From positions 22,568,001 through 22,632,000 of the forward strand of contig OZ281495.1 of NCBI GenBank assembly GCA_965637545.1: a stretch of DNA of 64,000 nt, in the 5' to 3' direction. The position numbers were made by a program, and so were the translations under genes. The stretch's first letter is position 1, and each line of letters opens with the position of its first letter. The notes beneath the pieces were generated by a model. That model ran no database searches, had not been told where the DNA came from, and worked only from the letters and a program-made list of their open reading frames with translations. The DNA is from Phallusia mammillata (taxonomy: Eukaryota). Shown here in pieces: positions 5,827-46,500 of this stretch.

Positions 5827-10631
<4,805 letters not shown>

Positions 10632-11712
10632 CAGTTTTTTACACACTGTAAGCGTTTTTTTTTCCAAAAACTGGCATTTCTAGCCTATACCTTTGTATAA
10701 ACCCGTCGGTTGCATGTGCGTTTCGACCCAAAAGTTCAAATATTTAACCTGAATGATATAGATGCAGGTTTTGAGGAAGGTTGGGTGGAACGAGTTTTAA
10801 ACGTTGTATAGGCCTATGCTTGTAATACAGAGTTATAATTCTTCGTTCGCTGGCCGAATACAAACATTTGTTTTAAAATTGTATGATATGTATAAAATGC
10901 TTATTGATGCATAATAAGCGCAATAAAATACGTTTTCTCTAAAAATTGTGTATGCTGATGCTTACTACAAGATGGCTAAAAGTGCCCAAAATCTTCACGT
11001 ACATTTGTCATGATGATTTGCATTATCAATCGGAAATGCAAATGCTTTAAATTCACGACAAGGAATGTTAATTTTTGTGGCTTACAAAGCGTTCAACCTT
11101 ATATTGCAGAAGATAGAACAAGAATGATTAAGAATTGCGTTTGAAACATTATTCATTGCATTGTTCCTACACGTTATTAGGCAACATTGCATCATCAGCA
11201 ACGAAAGTAGATTGCTAGCAGTAAACACACAAAAACCAATACTGATGGTAGTAGAAATTTAACAAAAATACAAGTTTGTGCTTTGTGTTATTTTCTCAGC
11301 CTCGTGATTGCAGTAAATTGATTGATCACGCGTGTATCACGTGATGTGCGCGTGGTTGGATAAGGCGTGCACGGTGAACGCCGCGTGTTAAGCATTTGTC
11401 TCACTACAGCATGACGGGGCAAAATCACGCGTGACTAAGGAAGAAAAACAACCAACAAGCAGTTATAAAATCCCCTTGCAGCGAAAACAACTTATCCTTC
11501 GTTCTGTTTTGCTGGCAGTTTTTTGTTCTCGTTGAAACGCTGTGTTAGTAGGTCTTATTCTTGTTGTTATGTTATCTGTCTTTATTGTTATACGCGGACT
11601 CTAAAGCAAAAATAAATTAAATTGAATTGTTAAAGGTGATATGCTAACCGTTATTTAAAGTATTGTTATTTTTTTCAGTCTTATATTAGATAACAGTGCT
11701 TTTTGATAAAAC

Positions 11713-14700
11713 ATGAAGTTAAAAGTACTTTACTGGGCAGCAGCAGTTTCTAAGCGAGATTTTTCTACAACTGTGGCCGCAAATGTTCGTCGTTTGCCAC
11801 ATGGTGAGTTTCACACCATGAGTAATGCTAAAAATCAAAAAGCATTGTTACAAGAAGAAATCGCCCTCCCTGGTGATTTAAGTGCACTACCTCAAGTCAA
11901 GTTGCCCGAAACTGAAAATCTGTTTAGAGGCAGCAACTTTGAATTCCCATGTTTAAACAGAAGGTATGTTAGATATAATTTTATTGGGTAGATTTAAGTG
12001 ATTCAATGTAATTTACTCCAAATATTTACATAGATTTGTAGATGGACCAGAACCAAACTATCAAAAGGTGATGGGTGGTTACAAACTCTTCAAACACAAC
12101 AAACCGTTTCATTTCTTTTATAACAAAGGAGTTCTTCCAGAAATACAGGCAAGCATGCAATTTGTGTGGAAAACCACAAAACCACTTTTGATTTACACCA
12201 TTTATTTAAACTTTAGTTGGCATATGAAACATGGGGAGAGCTGAACGAGGATGCCAGCAATGCTATTCTATTATACACAGGTTTATCTGCAAGTTCCCAT
12301 GCTGCACAACATGCGGTAAATCATTTGAAAAATATGACATGTTATTGTGGAGTGTTGTTTATTTTAAAAATGCAAAAGTAGATTCAAAAAGTGGTGCAAG
12401 ACTTATTACTGGGTTTCATATACATAGCAAAAAGTTGCTTTGATCCATTTTTTAAATAGTGTTAACAATAATGCAACCATCTATTTTTAACTGATTTATA
12501 TTGATGTTTTCAATGGTATGATTATTTAGGACAATTCTGCACCAGGATGGTGGGATAAATTTATTGGACCTGGTCAGGCACTTGATACCAACAAGTTCTT
12601 TATTATCTGTGCAAATCAGCTTGGTGGATGTTACGGCTCAACGTATGTTGTGCTTTGTTTCATCTGCATTTGCAGTTTAAATTGTGTTAACACAAATATT
12701 GTGAACATATTTCAGGGGCCCATCAAGTAAAAATCCTTTAACTGGAAAACACTATGGAACACATTTTCCCATGATAAGCATCAAGGATATGGTTAAAGCA
12801 CAGCAACTTCTTTTAGAAGAACTCTCAATAAAGAAGGTATGTTTAAATATTGTGAACTCAAATTTGGTGCAATACTCATAGAAAAAAATGATTTTTCTGG
12901 GTATATAACAACAGCAAATTTGCTTTTCGGGCAAGTTTCGTTAAATTATCTGGCAATTTGAATCCCATTGAAGGTAATACTAACACTGTAATACACAACT
13001 ATGCTCAACATTTGGGTTGAATTTATATTGTTTGGTGAAAATACACATCTTTTGTGTACCTTAGAGTTTAATTCATTTTAGAAGTATAAAGTGTGGTAAT
13101 AGAATATTAAATCACAATTTCAACCTTTACACAGAGTTACGGTTTATTTACCCACAGCGACCTTTGAACGTGGCATGCTACATACTTTAGGCAGCTTGAT
13201 CGCCCCTTTTTGTTTACTATTTAAATGAGCACATGTTTGAACAAAACCCGTGATGGCAATATCCTTTTGTTTATGATCCGAATTTTGATGCATCAATGCT
13301 ATGCAACTTGTTTAACTTTAAGTTGTATGTTCATAGTCTTCAGTTCACAATATAGTAGTTATGTGCCTGGTTTAGCTTCTTGAATCTACTGTATGCCACA
13401 TTTTTCGTCCCAAATTGACCAGCCATTAAAGTACAAACAAACTTGGTCACAAGATAGTCTTTTTTGTTGCTTTCCTGTTACGATTATGTGTGCTGTTTTG
13501 CCAAAGCGTCTTAACACCTAATTCCTGGCCTTTTACCGAGCTTGTTCTTAAAATTTTTGTTTTTCTTTAACAGCTCTATGCTGCTGTGGGATCTTCCTTA
13601 GGTGGAATGTGTTCCGTTGCCATGGCAGCAATGTACCCGACTCAAGTTAACAGGTAAATGAGCCCCAGAATGAGTGCCCTGTATTTAGTTTCTAAATTTG
13701 TTTAATTTCTATCAGGGTGGTATCCATTTCTGCTTGTGCCAAAACCCACCCATCTGCAATTGCTATGCGATACTTGCAAAGAAGGTGCATAATGGAAGAT
13801 CCCAACTGGAACTTGGGGCACTATTACGGAAAGGAATATCCTTTAAGGGGCATGAAATTAGCAAGGTTGGTGTGGTGTTTGCTTGTAAATATAGGTAAAG
13901 ATCATATAAATATAACCTCATGGTTTCACAAGTCGCATGTGCTTCATGGAGTGTTCTATGTAAACATCAGTTTAGGATTACCTTAAATCTTTTATCTGTT
14001 TTACAATTATCTAATGGTGCCGACCTTCCTCCTACAGAGAAATCGGAACAATAACGTATAGAAGTGGGCTGGAATGGGAAGAGAGATTCGGACGAAAGCG
14101 AATTTCCGGCGAGCCTCCGTCGTTATGCCACAATTTTGAAATTGAACAGTACATCGAGTATCAAGGTCTGCAGTTCGCAACAAAGTATGATCCCAACTCG
14201 TTGCTGTATATTTCCAAGGTATGTTTGTGTAACTGAACAGTAAAGTTATTTTGTACACTAGTTAATGCGTTCTTGGTTTACGACTCTTTTTACTTAGCAA
14301 AAAATGTTTCTGTGCGGAAATAAACTGGGTCAGTTGAAAAGTATCTCACACACGTATGCAAAGTTGGGATCAGAAGACCTAGACAAATTTGCATAGTTAT
14401 GTAAAACTTGACATACTACTTTTCCCACTCACGATTTGTTGGCACAGGACAAATTTGACATTTACCACGTACACGGCATAACATTATACAGGGCCGCGTG
14501 ACTGATCACGCATTGCATCAGCCGCGCCATTGCGGGCCTTTTTCACAAGTCTGTGTACCTTGCACCTTACAGTCATTGTCATAGATTCTACTTGAGCGAC
14601 CGTAAAGGAGTTTGACGTCATAGCCCTGTGTGCTTATTGATAGTCTGCGAAAATTGATGTTTGCTTTCAACAATGGGGATTTTTTGTCGCAAATTTGGAA

Positions 14701-15624
14701 ACCAAAGCCTTGTACGCCTTTAGTGCACTAAAATTAGCCTTGGTTAACTGTTTTATGACAATAACTGTTTAGTCGTTAACATATTTTTTACAATGGCTCT
14801 TTTATGAACTATGGACGCCACTTGTACAACCTTTCTCCATAACATGTTAAGAACTATCTGTTTTTCGGTGTTGTATGTGTCTTGGGGAGTTGCACTTTTA
14901 AAACAGCGAAAATAAATTGGGTCAACACGGTAATATATATTGACACTACAATATCGTGTTGTTGCAGGCTATGGACCTGTTTGACGTCAACGAATATTTT
15001 GAGGACTCAAACGAAGATGCCTTGGCCCATATAAAGTGTCCAGTGCTAGTAATGGGCGCCACGAGTGACGTCATATTTCCTATCGATCAACAACGCGAGC
15101 TAAGCAGCCGGCTGCGACAAGCAGGTGAGTGATCTTTGACCCACACAAAACACTCATAAAAACTTGTCTGCGTTGCTTGTTTGTGGATTTGCATAACGTG
15201 GCACATTGACCCAATTAAATTTCTAGCTATTGCACCTTTAATGAACGCCGTTAATGCTCTCTGCTTGCAGCGATAATAATTGCAGATTTTATAACGCAAA
15301 TGTTTACGGATTAAAACCAACTTGACCTGGTTGGTGTGGCACATCATTTGCTACACATTATATTTTGTCATGTCATTTTACTTGAAACAATTTTGCTTGA
15401 ATTAACAGTTTGGTAACAAGCCATTGCGTTTGGCCAGGGTTTTATTACCAATGTATCATTACGTTCTTGCAGGAAACGAAAGTGTGTCTTATTACGAGCT
15501 CAACTCTATCTTTGGACATGACACCTTCCTGTTGGACCTAACCACGATTGGTACAGCAGTGAAAGGTTTCCTTGAAACGGAGCTGGCAACCACAGGACAC
15601 CTATCCAAAAACGGCCGCAAATGA
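11713..15624 (+). CDS. MetX-family alpha/beta hydrolase: homoserine O-acetyltransferase-like, probable serine O-succinyl/acetyltransferase (fungal Cys2-like), probably mitochondrial
   Basis: Exons 11713-11963, 12034-12148, 12217-12315, 12530-12642, 12716-12836, 13574-13653, 13716-13865, 14038-14218, 14968-15124 and 15473-15624. Motifs include [39 protein letters not shown], nucleophile elbow GSSLGGM, KYDPNS, SDVIFP and GHDTFL. The N-terminus is basic/hydroxylated and resembles a mitochondrial presequence. Substrate assignment is inference. Confidence 0.92.
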
Positions 15625-18898: not shown

Positions 18899-21800
18899 AT
18901 GGCAAAGCAGTTTCAAAGAGTCTTTTCACAATTAAGTCTTCTACCATACTTACTACTGTTGTGTTTTGCCTTGCAATCAGCGTTTGGCTCAGGGGCCAAA
19001 CAACATGCCAGTCTTGGTACGAATAAGCCCCCTCATGTATTCACAAATGACTTCATAGTGGAAATGACGCCGGAAGGGCCATCAACAGCAAAGAGGGCCC
19101 ATGCAGATTGGCTGGCTACAAAACATGGATTTGAGAATCGTGGCACGGTAAGTCAGACTAATGTTTTCATTCAACACTTGTATGTTTAACACCTAACGCA
19201 TGTAATTTTGCCATGAGACTGTAATTGAAACCAGTTTTGGGTTCAACAATTTACCAACAACGCTTTGATTTTGCCTGGTATCTGGGTAAACATTGCCTAA
19301 GCGAAATGCCTCGCTTGGGTGGTTTTCTCAAGGAAAGGAACCATTTTGCTGTGCGAACGTCGCTATTTACACAGTAGGCAAGCCGACAGTGAAACGCCAA
19401 CAGCAAACACCACAAGCTTTCCCTTAAAACACCTATTTCGTACACAATGTATTATGCATAATTTTGTGTTTAATGCCTAGTCGATCAAACACACAAGTCG
19501 TTTTCAGCCATTCTGAAATGCATTATGTATGCGATTTAACGAACGCAATAAGATATATTTTTCCTTGGAATGACGCACGCCCAACTACTGACGACTGTTA
19601 CCTGCGCAAAAACGATATTAGCCATTGTTCACAAATGAATTATTTAAAGGCTTATGACCTTTACGCCGTGCGACGTATCTACTCCCAATGATGGACTTGA
19701 GGATGTCATGAGAACCGTTTTTTACATTTTAAATTTCGTGTGAAATGTTGTCAAAATATTTTCCGAAATACTGTTTTATAGAAGTTTATAGAAGTCGCCT
19801 TTATGTAAAAGCGTACAGATCACAGTGACATTCACAAACCCTGCGCAATTACTTGCCCCAAACACATATTGATTTCAAAATTCCATTATTAACACATATG
19901 GATTGTATATATATATGGCACTTTCCTCTTAGACAACCCAACAATACGTGTCATACCAATGAGTGAGATACGTGTGCTTCTGTGGTTTTCGTGTGTTGCT
20001 GCACGCGTTTCGCATGTACATAACAGAGATATACTGCGGTTTTTCCACAAATTATCATACATGTCGGTGTGTCATGTCACACATGCAAATATACGAACCG
20101 CAGTAATTTTGTTCGTAGTAAATCGCTAGAAATATACTTGACCTGGAAATTCCGTGCCATGTAATCTGTTTGTGACTCTTGATTCAGAAACGTTATCTGC
20201 TTAAAAATTGTTTTCCATCGCACAAATGTTACATGTCCACCATACAATTGCGTCTATTCTTTTGCGGGCCATCTATATATACGTCCTATGAGCTCGCTTT
20301 GGAGTTGGTGCGAGACATTTTAACCATTAAAGTTTGGTTCTTCCACATGAAAAATATTTATCCTCCATATGCAATTTAATTTTGGCAAAGAAATGCTATT
20401 TGTCTCGCTTTGCTATTGTTCGGAGCCCACAAAAATATGTTGGCAAGTTTTACATTAAAAAAGTTTCCGCAAGGTCGCGCAATGGAGTAAAACTAAGTTG
20501 TCGACCTGACAAGTTAACTCAAGTTGGGCAAGAGATGCGGCTTTCCGCGTAAAAATCGGCTTTCGGAATACCTGAATAAGAGTTGTGTATTAAAATGGTA
20601 GAGTGAATGATGTATTGCTGTGGTAGACTTCCATATATAATTCCACATGTAAAAAGCGCTCGGTCTGTCCTGTCGACTAATTAGGTGAGAATGAATCATG
20701 TATATCACACAGTTTTGGTGACTCGTTGCAATTTACTTCATGTTGGCGGTCGAACAAGGCATTGATCAATGATCGATAATCATTCGTGTTAGTCAGGGAA
20801 ATGGCACGTCCCTGTTTCCCCTGAAGGCCATTGGGTTTACCACGAGCAGTTTCGATCGATATGCAATCGCATTTTTTTAATTATAATTATCTGTCATTCG
20901 CAAAAAGGGCGCCTGTCCTGAGCCCTCTTTGCAACTGTTAGAGGCACTCCGAATGTCGTACCACAATCACGTTTGTCACATTGCCCATTGATCGGTCATG
21001 TAACACATTAACCACGACGTTGTAAAATACATCGGTCCCACTTAAGTGTTTGACTTTGCCTTGGCTTACCGAGAACAGCAAACATCCGGAACAAGGGAAG
21101 CTCTGTAGTTAAACAATGGTTGTTTTGCCAAGATTGGCCCGATTACAATCCTGGTGGGATGATTTTGATCCAATAATTCATCTTGAGTATGCCTGTATTT
21201 GATTGAAAATCAAATCGCACGCCACACAGTATTTTTGACCTCGAATTCACTTTTTATGGCCCTTCCGTAGTTGAAAGCCGATTCGCAAAGTTGAGAGACC
21301 CAATAACCGCAAGGGCTGCTGTCTCGCTGGTTTGTACACCCAAAATCGACCCTGGTTGTTGGATGAGCGGTGCCGGGGTTCACCAATCGGGCAATGTCGT
21401 AATAATAGAACCGCAAGTAGCTAGTTTGTTACTTTCCCAAGCCACAAATCATTGTTTCCCGACGCTCAGCGAGTACAATGTCGACAGGAAACTGTAATAG
21501 ATTTGGCTTTTGAACTTCGGCCCCGATCCTATGAAAAGAATATTTAAAACTGAATGTGTTTTGGCAGGTTGTTGGGGACGATGGGCTTTACCATTTTCGA
21601 CATCGAGCCTTAAAAAGAACCTCACAAGAGCCAAGTTTGGAACACATATGGAAGCTGCGGTTGTCGCCAAAGGTAATTTTGAGGTTGACTTAAAGCAACT
21701 CCAACATGAATTCTGTGGTTAAGTTTCGAGCTTCTTTGCCCAGGTACAAAATTAATCTCCCTGGCTTTTGCAGGTTAAAAAGGTTCGACAACTTGAAGGA

Positions 21801-24800
21801 TACGGTCGGTTGAAACGGGGTTACAAGACAAAAGAACATACATATCAGGGCCATGATCCGCTTTACAAATTCCAGTGGTACATTGTAAGTAACGTTTACC
21901 TTGCAAATAGTAACAACTTTGGCAACATGTTTTAATGGTATATGAAGAGCGAACGTTATGACAATTGAATATATATTTCGAAAGTTCTATTTGTAGTTGT
22001 GGATCCCATTTAATGACTATTTTTCAAGTACTAAAAATAAAATTTCGCTAAATAAGAGCCGTTTTATGAGAAGAGTTTACCATTCACACGATCGTTTGGC
22101 CATTTCGTGGTTATATTTGGCCTTATTAAATGTGAAAAATTTGAGACCAAACAAGCACGCTTGGCCGTGCAAACAGCAAAGTCATGGCTTATGGCAACAG
22201 TTAACGGGACAATAACCCGCGCCTGGGTCCAGTGACGATTTGACTGACGGAATAACGATGTTTGTTTTCCAGAACAATACGGGGCAAGCGGGTGGCACCG
22301 TCGGCTTGGATTTGAACGTACAAAAGGCCTGGGACATGGGTTATACCGGCAAGGGTGTCACTGTAGCTATAATGGACGACGGAATCGATTATCTTCACCC
22401 CGACCTGCGTGACAACTACGTGAGTCAGAACTGTCAACATCCATGTTGATCATTTGTGCTTAATCGAATTTTTAATGAAAGCAACAGGGCACTGCAAAAT
22501 GCCAAGAAAATTAATGTGATCCGTAAAAACTGAAAACTCACTATTGACAAGAAGTGGCATTTAAACTGTACACATAGAAGAGGTTGAAAAACGTTTACAA
22601 AAAGATATACATACGCCTTTTTAACTTACTTTAACTGAAAAAGCATACACATAGCATGAATTATATAACGGCGCAACGTAAGGTTTTGCAAAGGGTGTGT
22701 ACAATGTATACATTGATACAAAACAGCACATGACAAGTTATGCTGAAACAAAAGGAAAGGACACTTTAAACACACGCAATATGACTGGAAACATGGTATG
22801 AGTAAAAACTTACAAACGATATTGAAGCATTTGAAAACATAGCAATGCATAAATAAAAATGCGCCATGCAAAAAGACTTGAACAACGCGTAAAATAAACA
22901 ACATTAAAAAAGATTGGAGAAAGTAACTTAACAATGGAAGTTGAGCAGCGGACACACCGCCATGCGTCTTATCTTTAATCGGCGGACGCCAGATTGCAAA
23001 CACTCACCCTTTGCGGTTGTTTGCAAATATTTGTTCAAACGTTTCCAACCGCACGTCGATCAATGCAAAGTTGTTTGGCTCGCGTTCACCAAGTCGCACT
23101 AATCGTCGTCGTCAAATATGAAAGTGGTGCTTTTGACGTCGAGTTGCCGCTCGATCATACCGACCAGCCATCGGTCAGCTTCAGTTTTGCGTCGTAACCA
23201 ACCCACAGTAAGGTGTCGGTCTATCATTTCGATTCGACGCTCCTCCGACAACGCCGCCCATCGCCGTCGGTTCAGGCAACTGCTGTCGGCTAAATCGAGC
23301 AAAGTGCGACGAAGGCGATTGCAAACCACGTGACCAATGCAGCACACCACCTGCACTTTTTGCTCGCTCGTCATTTCTTTCCAAGGCACGTTGCGAGCCA
23401 GTTGGTATTGACTTACTCCAGAAGATGTCGGCGGACAGTGGGAGCATTGCCTCGGTGAGCGCAGCACGTCGCGTATGTCCCCCCTGAAGTCGTCTACCGA
23501 AACACTGCGAATAAGACGATCGCGGATACGCACAGGGTGAGAACATGGCCTTCCCCGGAATCTGGAAGCGCGTTTTCGGAAGATTCTGATTTGCTTTTCA
23601 AAAAGCATTTTAAGGCTCTCCTTCCATACGCGCTTTGTTGCTATGGCCAGAGCCTGGGTTACAATGCCCAACTGGCCGCGGAATCGTATCTCCCACGTGT
23701 GTTCGGACACAAACGCGTATCCGACGGGCGACGGCACTGCCGGGCTGTTGTTGTCGTTGGTCGCAGATTTCAAAAATAATCGCAGTTTGTATCGCTGATC
23801 GGATGAAGCTACATCGGTTGCCTCCAAGTAAACATACGGCGGATTCGTACAAATGTACCTGTTTTGTGCCACAGCTTCGTTGGTGTTGGAGCCGTAATAG
23901 CAAGCTCGAACATGCTGCATGACGTCAGTGGTCATGTAAACGTCATGCCACGGGTGCCTGAGGGTCATACGTCGAATATCCTCTCTAGCGTCGGGTTTCA
24001 AGGCATCAACATCGAACAGCTCCATCCTCTCTGCACACACAAAATGCGGTAACGTTAGCCAGCTCATGAGCTGATGCAATAAAGCGATGCAAAATCAAGT
24101 GCCACTTCCCGCAATAACCTGTCACGAGTTTCCAGAAAAATGCACACACAAAGCGTAAGCCGCTGTATTTGATACTACATGCATGTTTGCGTCCATGTCG
24201 CTTTTTTTGCGGCCGTTTAAGACCTACCATGCCGAGGACGTGAACTTTGTAAGCAAACGATTTATGTTTCTAAATTGCCACGTTTTAACACGCCTAAACA
24301 AACAAGGCTTACTCAATCCTGCACATTTAACCTTTTTAACTTTATTTTTTGTTTAACCCCAAGATTGTAAATTTATATTGCCTCGACTAGGTCATAAAGG
24401 GTCGAAAATAGCAAGCCTACACCTGACTCTTGTGCAGTCGATCCCACTTCTATAAGAATATCGACCAATTCTCAATTAAAATTTTATGGCATTCTAAAAT
24501 TTTAATTTTCTTTTTATCTCCAATATTTACCGTTCTTGTGCTGCCGCATTGACGCCGGTGGAAAGCCGAAATTCAGTTGCTTCGCTTCGTTATAGTAAGT
24601 CGTCAATTGCCGATCCTGGTCACGACCGAGGACGGTAACCACCACTCGTGACGTCATCAGTCGGACGGTGCGAAAAGCGTTGTTGACGTAGGGTTCAGTT
24701 GGCTCCACCGGGCCCGTAGCGGTCGCAGACTTGGCGGCAAAGGCGACGGACAGAAACAGGGACAGTAATCCACGAATCACGGTATCTCTCTTTGCTAATC

Positions 24801-27800
24801 GGTCAGATCTTGTCACGTTACGCATGTTCAAGGAGCAACTTCTGTCTGTCCGAAGTCCGTCTTCTCATGCTGGATGCTTGGCGAATCGCGACACAGTCCT
24901 TAAAACTGAATCCAGTGCTTTCGCCTGGAGCATAAACGCAATAACCGCCTCGGTTGCAGTATTTCCTGCACACAGCACCAACGGGCTTCTAAGAAAAAAA
25001 CATGTTTTTATACAGGATCCGGTTTGGCAGTTACTGTTCGCAATTAGTAACGGTAAAACGTCTGTCATAATTTTCGCAGACCTTCAAAACTTACAAAAAA
25101 ACGTCTTGCTCATTGAACCTCGTAACTCTACGCGAAGCTGATTAACTGTGCGCCGCAGAACTTTCTGTGCGGTCCAACCGCATGTTTAGTGAAAAAATTA
25201 CCTTACTGACTGCTGATGGCATGCGAACTCGTCGAAAGAGAACAATCCTGTCACGTAGCTGTGCAAATAATAGCTTTACCCTTGTAAGAGATTTGTAATG
25301 CTCAGTCAAGATCAGCCAAGCGCAAACGACTTTTGCAGTGATGCAAGCCTAGGGCCGCGCTAGGCAAGGTAAGCGTGCTGTCACTGAACCGAAAATACCA
25401 GATTGCACCAAGCAGCTTTGAAAGGCCGCGGGTTTACTGTCTGTCGTAAATGCTCGTTATGCGGGCGAATAACGGCATTCCTGTAAATTTCTCTCAATAT
25501 AACACCATCGCGTTCCGCGGTAAAAACTTGGCACAGTAAAATCATAGACGTCGGCGCAAACAGGCGCCGATTTGATCAACTGCTTCCGATGTGTAAAGCT
25601 CCCAGCGCGGTCCCATGGTGCCCCAACTGCCCGCGTGATTACCGCCGCCACTCGATCACCAACTGAAAGACAAACATGTTTTCGAAAGCGCAAACATGGC
25701 CGCTGTGAACCCACAAGCAAGGATTGAGGCCTGCAACTTGCGGCGGGTTATCTGAGTCGGATCAAGGTTGTTTGTTTATTGACGTACATCTATCACTAAA
25801 CAGGCTACTAATCGGCTTCTTTGCGATTACAAAATTGTAGAAACCACGAAACACGTCTCGGTAGCCAGAAAAGGTGCACATGACCGCATGCGGGAATATT
25901 TACTACGTTGCTTTGACGCAATCTTTTTGACAGTTCAGCACTAATGCAACACTTTCAAATTACCTTTAAAAAAGGTGAACAAATGTTTACGACCTAAACT
26001 TTGCGCCGATCAACTACTTAATAGCTCAACTTGCCCGCTTTTAAACAGTTTTGACATCGTTTGTTTTATAAAAACAACAAATATAACATTGTTAAATTCA
26101 TGACATCATACATGTAGGACCAACAGAAATGCCAACTCGGATCAATGACTGCATATTGCAGCTATTTTACATGTTGTGTTTCTAGGAAATGTACTTGTCA
26201 TGACTCAACACACAAGTACATTTTTCACGACTTAAATGTTAAGTAAACACGAGGTGTTAGTGACTGCTTTGGGGTGGGCAGTTATCACTTGCTGTATGAT
26301 CATAACTATATGCTCATTTTTATTTTTAGAACGCGGAAGCCAGTTACGATTTCAGCAGCAATGATCCTTTTCCATATCCCCGCTACACTGTGGACTGGTT
26401 CAACAGGTGCGCTATTTTCTACAATTAAATTTAGTTTGCTTGGATAAATTGAAGAGACGGGGTAAGGACCGTTTTACGGCATGAAACATGCTTTATTGCT
26501 GTCATATGTCATCTACGTGATATGCGACAAGACGACTTTTTGTCATATTGAGTTACTGATTGTTTGTTTACTGTGCATACGCCAGTTTGGCAGAAGCGCT
26601 CAAACGCTTGAAACTCTTTACGAGAATTGAGTCGAATTTATGATCATTTGATGGGAAACTAACAAACCATTAACAGAACTATCGATTAGTTGCCTGTAAA
26701 ATTCATTGTTTGCTTTCATTTTTGTGTTATTGCGCACCTGCTTCTTCTTTTTAAACACCTGCGCCCGCGCATGACTGGGATTAAACAGCCGGTTTTAAAA
26801 TTTTAAAACCTATTATGATAAACTATCCCGAAACTAATAAGCGTTCCAACAGTCCTTATTTCAAAGGCAAAAAATGGTGACAGTCAAATATATTTCTGAA
26901 ATTCTCAATGTTCTATATTATGATCTTACAATTTATTGATTTTACGGGTATGCGAGGCAAATGTATGCCTATTACCACCTGGAGGTTAAACAATGTTTTT
27001 TTAAAACCCTTCACCCAAACGCCAAGCTGTCCGAAACACAATGAAATTTCTATTTGTTGACGGTTGTTCTGACGACAGGTGGTTCTGACAGAACTAACGT
27101 GACAGCGCAAAAAATTCCTTTCATTAGCGCGGGTCGAAATCAATACGGATTGCGTTTGTTTGTGTGATGAATGACGGTTCAAAGCAGTCAGCGTTAATTT
27201 GCATAATTGTTAAAATTTCTGTAAAAATTCCGACCTGTGGGTGCGAAGTAATCCGATTTTCTACCGGTGATGAAATAGAATTATGCGATGAACAGAGCAG
27301 GGAATTCATACCGTACTTGGTATTAGCTTTTGTTTTTCAACCCCGAATCAAGGTTTTCTTGATTCCTGAGCCACTTCACGACATATTTATCAAATCGCTG
27401 CTGTATACCGTTATTCTAAAAAGTTAGATTCCTATTGAGTTCCCTAATGGTTATGCTGAGAAAAAATATTCCAAAAAGCTCTAAAACTCGAGAGCGCCGG
27501 CTTCAGGCATGTGTGTTGGCATATAAACTTGTGGCAAATAAGCGAAGAACTGCAACTGTTTTGAATAGACTGTGGTTTGCAGCCCGCGAAACGTTTCGCC
27601 ACGTTTGCAACAGCGTTCAAAATCATGCAGTCGCCGCTCGATAACCTAATATATACCGTGTCCAAACACATTTCCTACATCACCAACATCGTAATTAGTG
27701 TCCAGAAAAGTTTAAGCCGGTGCTGATTCTAAGAATTCGCGGTGGCTGTAACCTTGACTTTTGTGAGGAACGATGCTCGAATTAGCGCCGTGAGCAAAAC

Positions 27801-30800: not shown

Positions 30801-33395
30801 TTGCTATCCATGTTTGAGTTTGATTAAATAAAGCAAAGAGCCTTTATACAACGGAAGATAGTGATTGGAAATGATACATAAATAAATGAAAATCTTGAAG
30901 TCAGGCTTTGTTTTGATCGTTCTGGATTTTCTTTTTCCCCGAAATTTGCGCAATGCCGCCGCGGTTTTCTTACTATCCCCGCGCATAAATTATATAAATG
31001 ACTTTCGTTGTCTCCTAAAAACCATCATGACAATACGTTTAATGTCACAGGCAACCACCGACCTTTACGGGCAGTGCACGCTTCGTCATTCTGGTACATC
31101 GGCAGCCGCTCCCGAGGCCGCTGGGGTTTTCGCGTTGGCTTTGGATGCAAACAAAAACCTGACGTGGCGTGACATGCAGGTAAGTTTACCATAAAATTCC
31201 TCGTGGTCACCCTTTAGACGGCCTGGCTAAAAAGCTTGACATTTAAATGTGTTTTTAGCATTTAACCGTTCTTACATCAACACCGAAACAACTGCACGAC
31301 AATTTACACCAGTGGAAGAGAAACGGAGTGGGACTGTTTTTCAACCATTTGTTTGGATTCGGTGTCCTGAATGCCGAGAGAATGGTGAGTCATTGTGGTT
31401 TAGGCTAATTGGCATGACTGATAGGCAATACAGAGGTATTGGGCCTGTTAATTATGTGTGTGTTATTTTCCTGAAAATGTTACGTTGTTTCTGCTCGTTT
31501 TCATCTGTAAAATAATTTGTTCTTTCAAGCTTAAATTATGTAATAAATATTAACCTACAAATATTTCATTGGGAGATGGATCCAACCTTGAACTTGGTGC
31601 ATTTTAGGTAAAAATGGCGTCAACGTGGAAAACCGTACCTGCACGATTTCGCTGCGAGGGAGGTTTAATCGAAACACCGTTCAACATTCCGTCAGATGGC
31701 GCCCTCGAGCTAACCATCGACACTGATGCTTGTGATGGAAAACCCAATCATATTAGATATCTGGAACACGTGCAGGTTGGTCAAACGACTTGCGTTAAGC
31801 AATATTGCAGTTGGCCAGCAAAAAATACCATACGTACAAAATGCGCTAAAATCCTTGAGCAATTCGATTTTGTAATTAAAATAATAGTGAGAACAAGCAA
31901 ATTACATATTCATGCACATTTTTATTAAAGTGGTGTAACTAGAACTATCTTCTAGTGTCGTAAGTTAGGTCAATAGCTTACCCACTTGTATTGGCTTTTT
32001 CACTCACTATTTCGGACTGTGGTCAATGCACTGTAACAACATAATACCGCAGGCTGTTGACAGCCAGTGATGGTACTTCAGGATTTCCAAGCCTAAATCA
32101 AACTCGATTTTTACAGTCAAGTTAGCATCTGCCCTGCTAGCTCAGTCGGTAGAGCGTTGGACTCTTAATCCAACGGTCGTGGGTTCGAGCCCCACGTGGG
32201 GCGCTTTCTTTTTGTTTTTGCCCCAATTTGAACTTGTCGCAAAAAATTGAAACTTTTAATATCCCTGGCATAGGAGCATGCTCGTGTTTTCAAAAAAGTT
32301 GACAAAAATACTAATTTGGTCTCAGCACTATTTAAATTAACATAAAAGTGTGTTTTAATTCCAGCTGCTACGGAACTATTTTGAGCCCACACCTTGAACA
32401 AAATCAATTTAGTATCTGCTTGACAAACGTTTGAATGCTAGAGTTTTGGGCATGTGGCTAAACTCTACCTAAATCATTCCAGGAATATCTATGCACAATT
32501 CCGTTGCATGGGTTTGAATTGAGGCATTCATTCCAACTACAGCAACCGCCCTGCTAGCTCAGTCGGTAGAGCGTTGGACTCTTAATCCAACGGTCGTGGG
32601 TTCGAGCCCCACGTGGGGCGCTTATTTTAGTAAAAAAGTTATGTTTTTGTCTCAGGCGTTTATTACACTTGAATCTTCACGTCGTGGTGACGTCACTATC
32701 AATTTGACGTCACCGATGGGAACGAACTCCATGTTGCTCAATAAACGACCCAACGATGACGACAGCACGCGTGGTTTTAGGAGGTAACTGTGGATCAACT
32801 AACTAAAAATGTTGGTGAAATTGAGGTAGAACAGAGTGACGTAGTAAATACTATAATACTACCTTACTTTTAAGTGAAAAATATTAAAAATAATAATGAT
32901 TTGTGTAGATGGCCATTCATGACAACACACACTTGGGGAGAGGATCCACGTGGAGAATGGAAACTATCAGTTTCTCTCAACTCTGAATATCCTCAAGAAG
33001 GTCAGTCACTAAAAACTATTTACAAGTTTACCGTTATCTGCACGTACTTTGAGTCTAACCTTGATCAAACCTTTTAACATAAGAACAAATTGCTGAGTGA
33101 ATCAGTCTTCGTGAATGTTAAATCTAAAATATTTGGTCGAAACTTAAGTAAAGTACAATGATGGAGTGTTCTCATAAGTTAGATTTATATTTTGATTGCT
33201 CTTACAGGTCGAATAACTCGTTGGGCTCTGCTGTTTCACGGGACTCAGAAGGCACCGTACATCGACGAAATCGTGGATAACCTAAATTCAAAACTGGCAA
33301 TCTCTAAAAAGCTCGAATACGCGGAAGGTATTCTTCACGATTTGGTGGATGAGCAGGGGGACTCGGATACGAACGTTGATCCAAAACGGTCTTGA
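18899..33395 (+). CDS. PCSK2: Prohormone convertase 2 (neuroendocrine convertase 2)
   Basis: Signal-peptide exon 18899-19147, then exons 21568-21672, 21774-21884, 22273-22419, 26330-26406, 29538-29714, 30079-30166, 30560-30775, 31051-31179, 31259-31384, 31608-31775, 32656-32783, 32909-33000 and 33208-33395. The catalytic triad is in [13 protein letters not shown] and GTSAAAP. The PC2-diagnostic Asp oxyanion hole is present (WASGDGG), and the P domain has RRGD. Confidence 0.97.
23099..24825 (-). CDS. Nested antisense gene in PCSK2 intron 4; uncharacterised ~408-aa putative secreted protein
   Basis: Exon 1 is 24825-24531 (ATG with an upstream in-frame stop; donor AACG|GTAAAT, phase 1). Exon 2 is 24030-23099 (acceptor ttttgtgtgtgcAG|, phase 1) and holds a 310-codon open frame. 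The join reads ...RQHKN-E-RMELF.... A hydrophobic segment [13 protein letters not shown] lies near the N-terminus. An AT-rich UTR-like tract follows the stop. Confidence 0.72.
29745..29758. promoter_or_regulatory. RFX X-box-like palindrome in PCSK2 intron 6, with a CRE (TGACGTCA) ~20 bp downstream
   Basis: GTCACCATGGTAAC matches the X-box pattern GTNRCCATGGNAAC. This is a motif match only. Confidence 0.4.
32131..32203 (+). tRNA. tRNA-Lys (CTT), copy 1, intronic in PCSK2
   Basis: Full cloverleaf GCCCTGCTAGCTCAGTCGGTAGAGCGTTGGACTCTTAATCCAACGGTCGTGGGTTCGAGCCCCACGTGGGGCG with A and B boxes, followed by a T-rich terminator. Confidence 0.96.
32548..32620 (+). tRNA. tRNA-Lys (CTT), copy 2, intronic in PCSK2
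   Basis: Identical 73-nt sequence to copy 1; the flanks are unrelated. Confidence 0.96.
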
Positions 33396-43583: not shown

Positions 43584-46500
43584 TTAGGGAACCTCTGGAC
43601 AAACTTGTTGTAACAAACGACCAAGTGCTTGGCATCGATCCTTTTCATCTTCGCATCTTCTTTCCGCCTCCTTTTGACGTGACTCGGTGACCTGCAGTGC
43701 TCTCATTAGGTGGGAATTCTCGCAATACAAATCCTTCACCAAGGTTTCGGATTTGGCCAACTTGGAGTACTGTGCGACAAACAACGTTATTGGTTTTATC
43801 GTGCACAAAACCAAGGTTTAATGATAAAAAAACGAATACACAGAAGTTGGAGCTGTATTTTTTGCCAGAGCAGTGTAACGCTGCCGTGCATGGATTTCCA
43901 AAGCCCATAGCCACCTTACGACATAGTTAACTCTGCATTCTTTTATTATTTTACCTTTTTATTTTAGTTCGTCACCGGTTATGCTGAGCCAGTATTCCTA
44001 GAGTGTAGGATAAGTACGTAAATGTAGAGGTTCCACCGTTCACACAAGGCACTTTCAAAAGGTGGCTTATCATGGATGGTATTTAATTGTAGAGAAAAAA
44101 AGACAAATAAGGATTTTAGCATTGTGTTTTCTGCATCTGACGTTTCAATATATTTTTCTGACAACAAGTTTTACAAAAACTTTGGCCTATTCCACCAACT
44201 ATGCAAGCAGCGCTGTTCTATTTATGTCTCAAAAAACCACTGGCACAAAATATACCAAAACTGTGTTCACAATTTGTTGTTTGGTTTCAAACGCCATTTT
44301 TGATAATCGAACACCCTATGGTTTTATACGTTCAACTTAAGCACGTACCAGGTCTTTGGTGCGTTTCATCTGGCTGTTCAGCTGTTGTCGGGTCATAGTC
44401 AGCCTCGAACGAAGCATGTTTGGGTCCGAAGTTGCACCGGAACCTTGTGACGTCACGCTCAGAGCGTCACTCTCGTCGTCAGTCGCGACGTGGTGCATGA
44501 CGTCATCGCTTATGCTCTGGTTGGCCAGTCCGTTCGCGGCGAGCTGGGTAAGTTGAGCCTTTAGATCGGCTATTTCCTAAAAAGCATTGATTTCAAAGGT
44601 TTGTGCATGACACTTACGTATGAATGTCAGGTCGTAGATAAATCTACTTATTCTTGTCCACTGCCCTATCGCGTCGCTTCTTACGCAGGTTCGAAACGTG
44701 AGTGCACGAATCCCTGTTTAGGTCAACGTGCAAGAAAGAAATAATTAAAATGAAAGGTCACAGGTTGCCTGTTGCAACACGACCGTACATATTTATTGTC
44801 AAGATTTAGACACGTAACATTTATTTGTGACTACGCTATCGAATGCGTTTAAAAAATTACACAGTTTTTTGACAAATTATGAAAAACTGCTGATGATTAG
44901 TATGCTTGACATACTGGAATGTTTTGCAATTCCAATCCTGACTATTTTAGGAATACAATTTACCTTTGTCATTTCTCCAATCTTCTCTTCAGCGAGTCTC
45001 CTCCCTCTACTTTGCTCCTCATCCAATCTCGACTTTCGTCTGCTCCGGACTCGAGGAGAAGGAGTGGGAGAGCTCATCCCACTCCTCTCCAACTTCTCAC
45101 ACTTTGCATTCAGTCCTGCATTCTCCAGGCGGCAAGTAAGTTTCTCGTGTTCAAGACCTCGCACCTTTAGTGAATGACATGAAAATATGTGAACTTGTAC
45201 GAGTAACTTTTCAAGCAGAGTTTTGTGTGATTGGGTTTTTGTTGTTTGACGCATAATGAAATCTGTAGAGGGACCACTGGAGTGCAGTAAGGCAAATAAA
45301 AGACTTTGCCGTAATATATAGAGGATACTATTAGTTAAAAAAGTTGTTAGTTTTGCTGTTATTATATTTCTTGCGCCAAATTTTCAAGTTATACCCTTGT
45401 TTGAAAGTAGATGTTGCTTTATTGGGAACTTAATTATTAACGGGACAAATAATTGGACTGCATGAGAACATGATACGGTTAGACATGACTTGCTAGGCTT
45501 TTTGTGTTTTATGTAGTTATAGCTTGACTATAGTGCGGTTACCTTTTCCAGCAGTTCATCGTATTGTCGTTTTAACCGAGTTTTTTCGACCTCCATGACA
45601 TCAGCTTCGTTTTGCATACGGGAGATCACGTGCGATTTCTCTTGGTTCGAATCCAAAAGATCCTCCATCTAAACAACACAACCATGCCACAAACCTTACA
45701 TTTACAAGGTCACATTAGTTAAACCTCTGACATCGGGATCCCAGTTATGAATTTATGTTCATCTTAACTGATACTGGTCAATCTGGCGATCCCCTACTAC
45801 TAAGCTGACATGTGCATCATACGGGGCAGGCAACGGTGCTTGTGATTCGACTTTCGGCGGATCTCCACTGAGCCTGCGTAGCTCAGTTGGTACAGCGCGA
45901 GTCCCGGAAAGACTCCTGTCGTGGGTTCGAATCCCACCGCAGGCTAGATTTTTCTAGCCTACGCCTTGCCACATGGTGGTGAATGCTTGGTGACCGGCTG
46001 ATTCGGTATGGCGCCTTCAATGGGCATGACGTACTGTGATTTACATACGAGTGTGCCGTGATCGCTGGTCTGCATAGACGCTTCAGGGTTGATCCCAGTT
46101 ATGAATTTATGTTCATCTTAACTGCCAACGGGAAAGAATAATTTCTTTTTTCATTTCCTATGCACCTGTGTACGAAGGTTTAGGTTCAGCTGCTCCTTTT
46201 CGGAAACTTTTCTGTTGACGTCATCCAAGCGTTCTTTGAGCAAAGAAGACTGTCTGACGTCATTACCAGCTTCACCCATTTTCATGTCGCGGCTGTGGAG
46301 GTCGGTAGTTGCTCGGGAAAGAAGGTTTTCCAGGTCTTGGTTTCTTTGCTGTCGGTTGAATTCGTAACATAGTAAGTTTGTGATTGAAGTCAAGAGTCAC
46401 AGTTTTGAAGATGTAAATTTTCAGCTTTTTATAAAAATGAAAAAAAAATACATCTTGCTAAGTCCGACAAATATATTTTTTGACATGTTCTTATGTGCTA

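Follow-up and report, generated by a model that had tools for sequence, protein, structure and literature searches.

Intron 4 of the proprotein convertase 2 (PC2) gene of the tunicate Phallusia mammillata carries two long open reading frames (ORFs) on the strand opposite to the host gene. Are these the exons of a second, nested gene and, if so, what does that gene encode and how old is its position? The locus lies in a stretch of 64,000 nucleotides, here called the window (contig OZ281495.1 of assembly GCA_965637545.1, positions 22,568,001 to 22,632,000, forward strand), and coordinates given without a contig name are positions in the window. A first-pass annotation, made from the letters alone, had joined the two ORFs into a hidden, lineage-restricted gene for a secreted protein with no recognisable domain.

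The favoured explanation, to which a probability of roughly 85% is assigned, is that this is a genuine two-exon, protein-coding gene that is under purifying selection, has a secreted trefoil product and lies antisense in PC2 intron 4, as the orthologue of LOC144747076 of Ciona intestinalis and LOC143445854 of Clavelina lepadiformis. It rests on the gene model and on homology, synteny and selection, on a transcript showing that the gene is transcribed and spliced in a relative, and on a fold predicted for a relative with 41% identity.

Gene structure and coding evidence

Both minus-strand ORFs are present where they had first been placed. One, at 24514–24831, comprises 105 residues counted from a TTG and has its first in-frame ATG at 24825, while the other, at 23099–24079, comprises 326 residues. 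The coding part of exon 1 spans 24531–24825 (minus strand, as do all parts of the nested gene) and contributes 98 codons and the opening base of a Glu codon that the intron splits. This is followed by an AT-rich, phase 1 intron of 500 nt with GT...AG ends (24031–24530), and by the coding part of exon 2 (23099–24030), which has 309 codons and the stop TAG at 23101–23099. The donor after 24531 (AGAACG/GTAAAT, where the slash marks the boundary) and the acceptor before 24030 (TTTTGTGTGTGCAG/AGAGGATG) are canonical and in phase 1. Joining them restores the Glu codon and gives 98 + 1 + 309 = 408 codons, as the first-pass annotation had calculated. An in-frame TGA lies 16 codons 5' of the ATG.

Two further elements were seen at the ends of the gene. 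A possible upstream ORF of 16 codons occurs in the 5' leader (24868–24820, minus strand, with its ATG at 24868) and ends at a TAA that overlaps the start region of the nested gene in a different frame. A possible polyadenylation signal, ATTAAA, is found at 22974–22979 (minus strand), approximately 120 nt past the stop, and is a sequence pattern only.

With 331 codons between stops, the exon 2 frame exceeds every other frame in the window, of which the next has 172. When its own GC-rich region was shuffled 2000 times with dinucleotides preserved, no shuffle reached this length (mean 134, standard deviation 32, maximum 305), in keeping with the original view that an exon of 310 open codons is unlikely by chance. 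The length of the exon 1 ORF alone is not significant, as it was reached in 422 of 2000 shuffles, and exon 1 is accepted as real because of homology. Composition was counted with the two exon pieces side by side and the split codon left out. The GC fraction is 0.51–0.56 in both exons versus 0.37–0.41 in the 500-nt intron. By codon position it is 0.56/0.45/0.59 (GC1/GC2/GC3) versus 0.52/0.43/0.48 for the exons of the host and neighbouring genes, so that the nested gene resembles its neighbours with a somewhat higher GC3. Rfam and tRNA scans of host intron 4 revealed no RNA gene.

An uncharacterized tunicate family

Wherever the window protein was searched or folded, exons 1 and 2 were used separately. 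A filter-free HMMER search of 1.84 billion representatives with exon 2 returned 14 matches, 13 of which are convincing (E 1.5e-75 to 6.9e-09); the remaining one, the repeat protein P0065 (E 1.3e-4), was excluded from the family as spurious. The E values include 1.5e-75 for P0052, 1.5e-56 for P0053, 2.7e-56 for the Clavelina protein and 4.6e-24 for that of Styela. Every named family member is from a tunicate and no relative outside the tunicates was found in this search, so the gene is lineage-restricted, as had been proposed. The unnamed members come from metagenome, metatranscriptome or Logan contigs.

The named relatives are LOC143445854 of Clavelina lepadiformis (XP_076801320.1, 420 residues) and LOC120346089 of Styela clava (XP_039271674, 464 residues), each of which is called "uncharacterized protein" in RefSeq, and LOC144747076 of Ciona intestinalis (P0073), which was added by a profile search. 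Thus, the gene is not hidden in relatives: the copy in the window is new, and the family is already listed in RefSeq as an uncharacterized LOC in three tunicate genomes. In full-text literature searches, neither the family nor a gene nested in a tunicate PC2 turned up in any paper. A word-index protein search with exon 2 gave no match and is uninformative, given the 13 relatives found later by HMMER.

The similarity extends over both exons. Full-length members (405, 420, 401 and 394 residues) are colinear with exon 1 plus exon 2, and homologues from Ciona, Clavelina and a transcript contig cross the predicted junction without interruption, reading ...FGFPP... on the exon 1 side, then E, then RME(L/I)F... 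on the exon 2 side. Exon 1 itself is matched in the Tara metagenome scaffold L001 (E 5e-10), in a second metagenome sequence, L008 (42% identity over 79 residues), in Clavelina (46% identity over 57 residues) and in Ciona. The Ciona and Clavelina proteins are 37–42% identical to the window protein over the whole length, and the Styela protein is 29% identical. All three have a signal-type start, conserved cysteines and motifs in common with it, and the Styela copy differs in having a longer N-terminus and more introns. Of the 31 near-invariant positions of the family that the window protein covers, 30 are unchanged, and the exception is a Gly to Ala change at exon 2 residue 258.

The RefSeq model of the Ciona protein P0073 (L015 10001–11634) has a hydrophobic insert of approximately 60 residues exactly at the exon 1/exon 2 junction. 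It is absent from P0053, which is 80% identical, and from all other members and is probably a mis-chosen splice site or a piece of retained intron.

Conserved nesting in PC2 intron 4

The host, on the plus strand, is a proprotein convertase (Peptidase_S8 and P_proprotein matches) and the nearest named relatives of its exons are annotated as neuroendocrine convertase 2. Counting coding exons within the window, exon 4 (22273–22419) encodes NNTGQAGG... and has the donor GTGAGT, intron 4 spans 22420–26329 (3910 nt), and exon 5 (26330–26406) is a micro-exon of 77 nt that encodes NAEASYDF. The nested gene lies wholly inside this single intron, on the opposite strand, confirming the proposed arrangement.

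The same arrangement is found in relatives, as the first-pass annotation had suggested should be looked for in other ascidians. A homologue lies antisense between the same two PC2 exons in Clavelina (L006), in Ciona intestinalis (L015) and in a metagenome tunicate (L008/L010). In L001, two opposite-strand ORFs downstream of a PC2 exon match exon 2 (E 2e-18) and exon 1, and in L014 the homologue is antisense at approximately 250 nt from the PC2 micro-exon; L001 contains the upstream PC2 exon side only and L014 the micro-exon side only. The flanking exon of L001, L008, Ciona and Clavelina shares 81–92% identity with PC2 exon 4 of the window. In Clavelina, Ciona, L008/L010 and L014, the micro-exon lies beyond the nested gene.

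L014 is itself unusual. This metatranscriptome-type contig (positions 1–3166) combines an intron-free 3' half of PC2, from the micro-exon to the stop on the minus strand, with a copy of the nested gene that runs without interruption on the opposite strand. The contig may come from a genome that is very compact, it may be a transcript that is unspliced or overlaps in antisense, or the assembly may have joined two overlapping transcripts.

The intron of the nested gene is also conserved. In RefSeq, the Clavelina gene is modelled with exactly two coding exons; the phase 1 intron of 418 nt between them lies in the same codon as in the window, and its splice sites (AACGAG/GTAAGA ... TTCAG/AGAGGA) are nearly those of the window. 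In the window and in Clavelina alike the intron splits the Glu codon before R-M-E, and the gene of Ciona shares the two-exon layout.

The Styela homologue (L007, 10001–16550) is different: it lies antisense in an intron of a gene for a 1314-residue, Ig/FN3/Bravo_FIGEY, L1CAM-like neural adhesion protein. Here, the guest gene has changed host while staying nested. No PC2 exon was found beside the homologue in L011, for which approximately 10 kb on each side were fetched, or in the whole 9.6-kb contig L012. In the family tree the Styela-type sequences form one clade (support 100/99) and PC2-linked members fall on both sides of the midpoint root, which suggests, though it does not prove, that nesting in PC2 is the older state. 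The antisense placement in PC2 intron 4 predates the split of Ciona, Clavelina and P. mammillata.

Transcription and selection in relatives

Contig L013 is 1324 nt long and has a single ORF of 401 codons. It aligns to the genomic scaffold L001 in three blocks with 84–87% identity, leaving gaps of 211 and 440 nt in L001. The alignment resolves three of the gap boundaries, and each has canonical splice-site sequence, which identifies L013 as a spliced transcript from a sister species of L001. The first L013/L001 junction is in phase 1 and at the position that had been predicted for the window. The second intron was gained in the L001/L013 lineage near the C-terminus, after ...VWGK (L001 12177–12616), and explains why the genomic ORF of L001 ends approximately 50 residues early.

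Over 317 aligned codons, L013 and L001 differ by 0.092 nonsynonymous substitutions per site (dN) and 0.563 synonymous ones (dS), so that dN/dS is 0.16, below the value of 1 that the first-pass annotation had named as a check.

The protein: N-terminus, cysteines and predicted fold

The first 31 residues (24733–24825, minus strand) resemble a signal peptide, with a charged lead of 18 residues followed by a hydrophobic core of 13. The Kyte–Doolittle maximum for an 11-residue window is 2.45, at residue 20, and in neither exon product does a 19-residue window exceed 1.6, the cut-off for a membrane helix. A hydrophobic, signal-type start is present in all eight N-terminally complete sequences, that is, the window protein and seven relatives. 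A 19-residue stretch above the membrane cut-off is seen in two members only: that of P0072 coincides with the signal segment, and that of P0073 falls in the insert that is probably mis-spliced. In the window protein, the short core behind a charged lead suggests a signal peptide that is cleaved rather than one that anchors the protein in a membrane. Six cysteines are conserved in the family, which suggests disulfides, and N-x-S/T sites are frequent. Together with the N-terminus they indicate that the protein is probably secreted. Consequently, of the earlier "signal peptide or signal anchor, secreted" the hydrophobic start is borne out in all full-length homologues, and secretion itself is a likelihood read from sequence.

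No domain had been recognised, and in terms of sequence families this still stands. A single-sequence Pfam scan of exon 2 gave noise only, scans of 16 family members had no FGF, IL1, Ricin_B or MIR match at E <= 0.1, and the family profile did not match any PDB sequence. In contrast, a fold could be recognised in a model. AlphaFold2 was applied to P0053, the Ciona-like relative that is 41% identical to the window protein, using an alignment of 16 rows, and gave a predicted local distance difference test (pLDDT) of 84.2 and a predicted template-modelling score (pTM) of 0.82. The model has eleven strands in residues 52–211, helices in 212–396 and a last strand at 400–404. When it was compared with known structures by VIA-align, the best 50 rows were all beta-trefoils (Z 10.7–12.2, 118–146 residues aligned, root mean square deviation (rmsd) 2.6–4.5 Å). 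They include FGFs, the IL-1 family, ricin-type lectins, MIR domains of IP3R/RyR and inhibitors, and no single trefoil family is favoured. The aligned range runs from approximately residue 50 to 404/405, so that the trefoil is completed by the C-terminal strand, with the helical domain inserted ahead of it.

Transferred to the window through family alignment A1, the model predicts a 12-strand beta-trefoil, closed by the C-terminal strand, with a helical domain of approximately 185 residues inserted before it. In addition to the signal-like start, exon 1 (24531–24825) would encode strands 1–3, which are assigned by homology. Strands 4–11 would correspond to exon 2 residues 1–118 (23675–24028), with conserved Cys43 and Cys60, and the all-helical domain, between strands 11 and 12, to residues 119–297 (23138–23674), with conserved Cys162, Cys195, Cys229 and Cys251. 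The C-terminal strand, FIFDD (23108–23122), aligns with the last strand of P0053.

Several known systems provide comparisons. The P0053 model superposes on beta-trefoil proteins (FGF, IL-1, ricin-B, the MIR domains of IP3R/RyR and Kunitz-STI inhibitors), and secreted FGFs share with the nested-gene protein a signal peptide and a basic patch, which in the latter are predicted. The known trefoils differ in that they have no detectable sequence relation to the family, and in that the predicted trefoil is interrupted before its last strand. With the trefoil-plus-helical regions of IP3R/RyR, the trefoil part alone aligns (131–139 residues). The long alignments to IP3R/RyR given by Foldseek were rejected as a two-domain match (template-modelling score ~0.2, rmsd ~20 Å), and VIA-align superposes only the trefoil. 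As modelled, a trefoil with this inserted helical domain matches no described trefoil family that was found.

Some points weigh against the favoured explanation or narrow it. The fold was modelled for P0053 and reaches the window protein only by way of alignment A1, and the alignment behind the model has just 16 rows. When the exon 2 product of the window was folded on its own by single-sequence AlphaFold, the pLDDT was 41. A Foldseek search of the PDB with the P0053 model returned nothing at E <= 0.001, and the similarity to beta-trefoils is at 4–12% identity, which is uninformative on ligand or activity. Finally, the transcript support comes from the relative L013 and not from P. mammillata itself.

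Alternative identities

The alternative that survives best, though it is unlikely, is that the product is a convertase substrate. Here, PC2 or a furin-type convertase would cut at a basic linker and host and guest would form an enzyme–precursor pair. At the linker position, seven of 14 members have an R-x-K/R-R motif inside a K/R-dense stretch, two more are K/R-dense without the motif, and in most members the stretch sits just before an invariant cysteine. The product is probably in the secretory pathway, judging from its sequence, and in at least six tunicates its gene is found linked to PC2. However, no other basic cluster in the clade is as weak as the linker in the window (23543–23587, minus strand, up to the invariant Cys162), which has one K-R dibasic site and no R-x-K/R-R, and P0057 and P0060 lack a basic linker altogether. 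The model also makes part of the basic run helical. In the model the C-terminal strand completes the N-terminal trefoil; the two halves thus share one fold and cleavage at the linker would leave a two-chain globular protein and not free peptides. The protein has a single basic linker, lacks repeats of a peptide unit between dibasic sites and is predicted to have a globular fold that ties both ends, which is not the make-up of a neuropeptide or prohormone precursor. Moreover, the Styela copy, which is outside PC2, still has the basic linker, and physical nesting is no evidence of an enzyme–substrate relation. The pairing with PC2 is therefore possible but unsupported.

7B2 (SCG5) and proSAAS are secreted binding partners of PC2 and PC1/3, respectively, and are mostly disordered. 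As a lead only, they resemble the nested-gene product, as this alternative pictures it, in being secretory-pathway proteins with basic cleavage sites, and those two are functionally tied to a neuroendocrine convertase. They differ in that there is no sequence similarity (no Pfam match) and in that the window protein is predicted to be globular.

It is rather improbable that the family is a very divergent branch of the FGF or IL-1 superfamily, that is, a secreted beta-trefoil ligand for an Ig-domain receptor that perhaps stands in for the IL-1 not found in tunicates. The top structural matches include FGF12, FGF10, FGF4, FGF18, IL-1beta, IL-36gamma and IL-33 (Z 11.0–12.2), and the best, though weak, matches in the viral fold library include several baculovirus FGFs. 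Lectins, protease inhibitors, toxin-binding domains and IP3R/RyR trefoils have equal Z. The FGF (PF00167) and IL1 (PF00340) models match none of the 16 members at the threshold given above and neither window exon at E <= 1, and the profile search of PDB sequences lent this identity nothing. We know of no FGF or IL-1 with a helical domain inserted before the last strand. A survey of 2026 reported IL-1 homologues in many invertebrates but found none when it came to Ciona, Botryllus and Styela; the proteins that it describes as ancestral IL-1 have a PDZ domain and no signal peptide (PMC13736523). Pro-inflammatory IL-1 members also lack a signal peptide, whereas the family here has a signal-type N-terminus.

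Just as doubtful is a secreted or endoplasmic reticulum-lumenal carbohydrate-binding protein of the ricin-B or MIR trefoil type. Lectins or carbohydrate-binding modules (HA1/HA33, PSL, SeviL, CNL, CBM42 and SDF2-like) account for many of the best structural matches, and the location in the secretory pathway, if the sequence is read correctly, would suit such a protein. Against it, neither Ricin_B_lectin nor MIR gave a Pfam match in the 16 members, a threefold Q-x-W repeat was not seen by eye in alignment A1, and a KDEL-type C-terminus is not conserved in the alignment.

The weakest alternative, a chance ORF, pseudogene, transposon or viral ORF in the intron in place of a host gene, could point to a GC3 and CpG content somewhat above those of the host exons and to a weak herpesvirus assemblin match (Pfam E 0.099, PDB E 0.12; rejected as chance, with one of 16 members matching), but it is refuted for practical purposes by synteny and selection, as the gene is single-copy, syntenic across tunicate orders and constrained at a dN/dS of 0.16, its ORF is intact and keeps the conserved residues of the family, searches of the window found neither terminal or inverted repeats beside the gene nor another copy of it, and, of the findings that would have spoken against the first-pass annotation, a lack of conserved ORFs in relatives did not hold and a transposon or viral match did not appear in viral contigs, in phage records or, at E <= 0.001, in the viral fold library.

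Surroundings of the nested pair

The remaining host exons upstream of the nested gene are exon 1, from 18899, exon 2, near 21565–21670, and exon 3, near 21776–21915 (all on the plus strand). Adjoining PC2, at approximately 11710–15621 (plus strand), are motifs that look like a homoserine-O-acetyltransferase-like alpha/beta hydrolase; two scanned exons of this gene gave no Pfam match. An Abhydrolase_1 gene is also found beside PC2, in the same place, in Ciona and Clavelina. Further upstream is the gene of an ETS-family transcription factor (8184–10628, plus strand), with a Pointed/SAM exon at 8184–8477 (E 1e-15), an Ets domain at 9706–9909 (E 1e-24) and a long, Q/P/Y-rich last exon at 10146–10628.

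A later PC2 intron contains two near-identical tRNA-Lys(CTT) genes at 32131–32204 and 32548–32621, 417 nt apart and on the same (plus) strand as PC2. A tRNA-Ser(GGA) gene at 45871–45946 (plus strand) adjoins inverted repeats of 96 nt (45983–46078/51124–51219), which are 89% complementary and 5 kb apart. There is a second inverted pair at 46072–46128/50251–50307 and the two pairs are possibly the ends of a mobile element.

Discussion

The nested gene is best explained as a genuine, tunicate-specific coding gene with a probably secreted product, and a sequence of events can be proposed from this. The 408-residue product would enter the secretory pathway by way of its N-terminal signal peptide. 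It may then act as an extracellular binding protein, ligand or lectin-like factor, like other secreted beta-trefoils, and a secreted binding protein is the function that this analogy suggests. The basic linker could serve as a glycosaminoglycan-binding or convertase-sensitive surface loop.

Why the gene has stayed in PC2 is a separate matter. The simplest explanation would be inertia, as an intronic gene is hard to separate from its host, and shared neuroendocrine regulation may contribute. The locus resembles the conserved nested antisense pairs of chordates, in which a whole gene lies in one host intron and is kept there across deep divergences. It differs from them in that the guest is a tunicate-only orphan, not shared with vertebrates, and in that the Styela lineage has a different host. 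A bolder proposal is that the family is a tunicate-invented class of cytokine-like ligands, possibly in the role of IL-1, that is kept in the PC2 intron for shared neuroendocrine regulation and is matured by a convertase at the linker. This is a long shot.

What had been an unannotated pair of ORFs is now a well-supported gene, which defines a tunicate-wide orphan family without a Pfam entry. At least two ascidian orders, and several tunicates known from metagenome or metatranscriptome contigs, have kept the gene in this PC2 intron, which makes it a clean case for the persistence of nested gene pairs. As Ciona carries the same gene at the same place, its expression, secretion, cleavage and knockout are testable in an established model.

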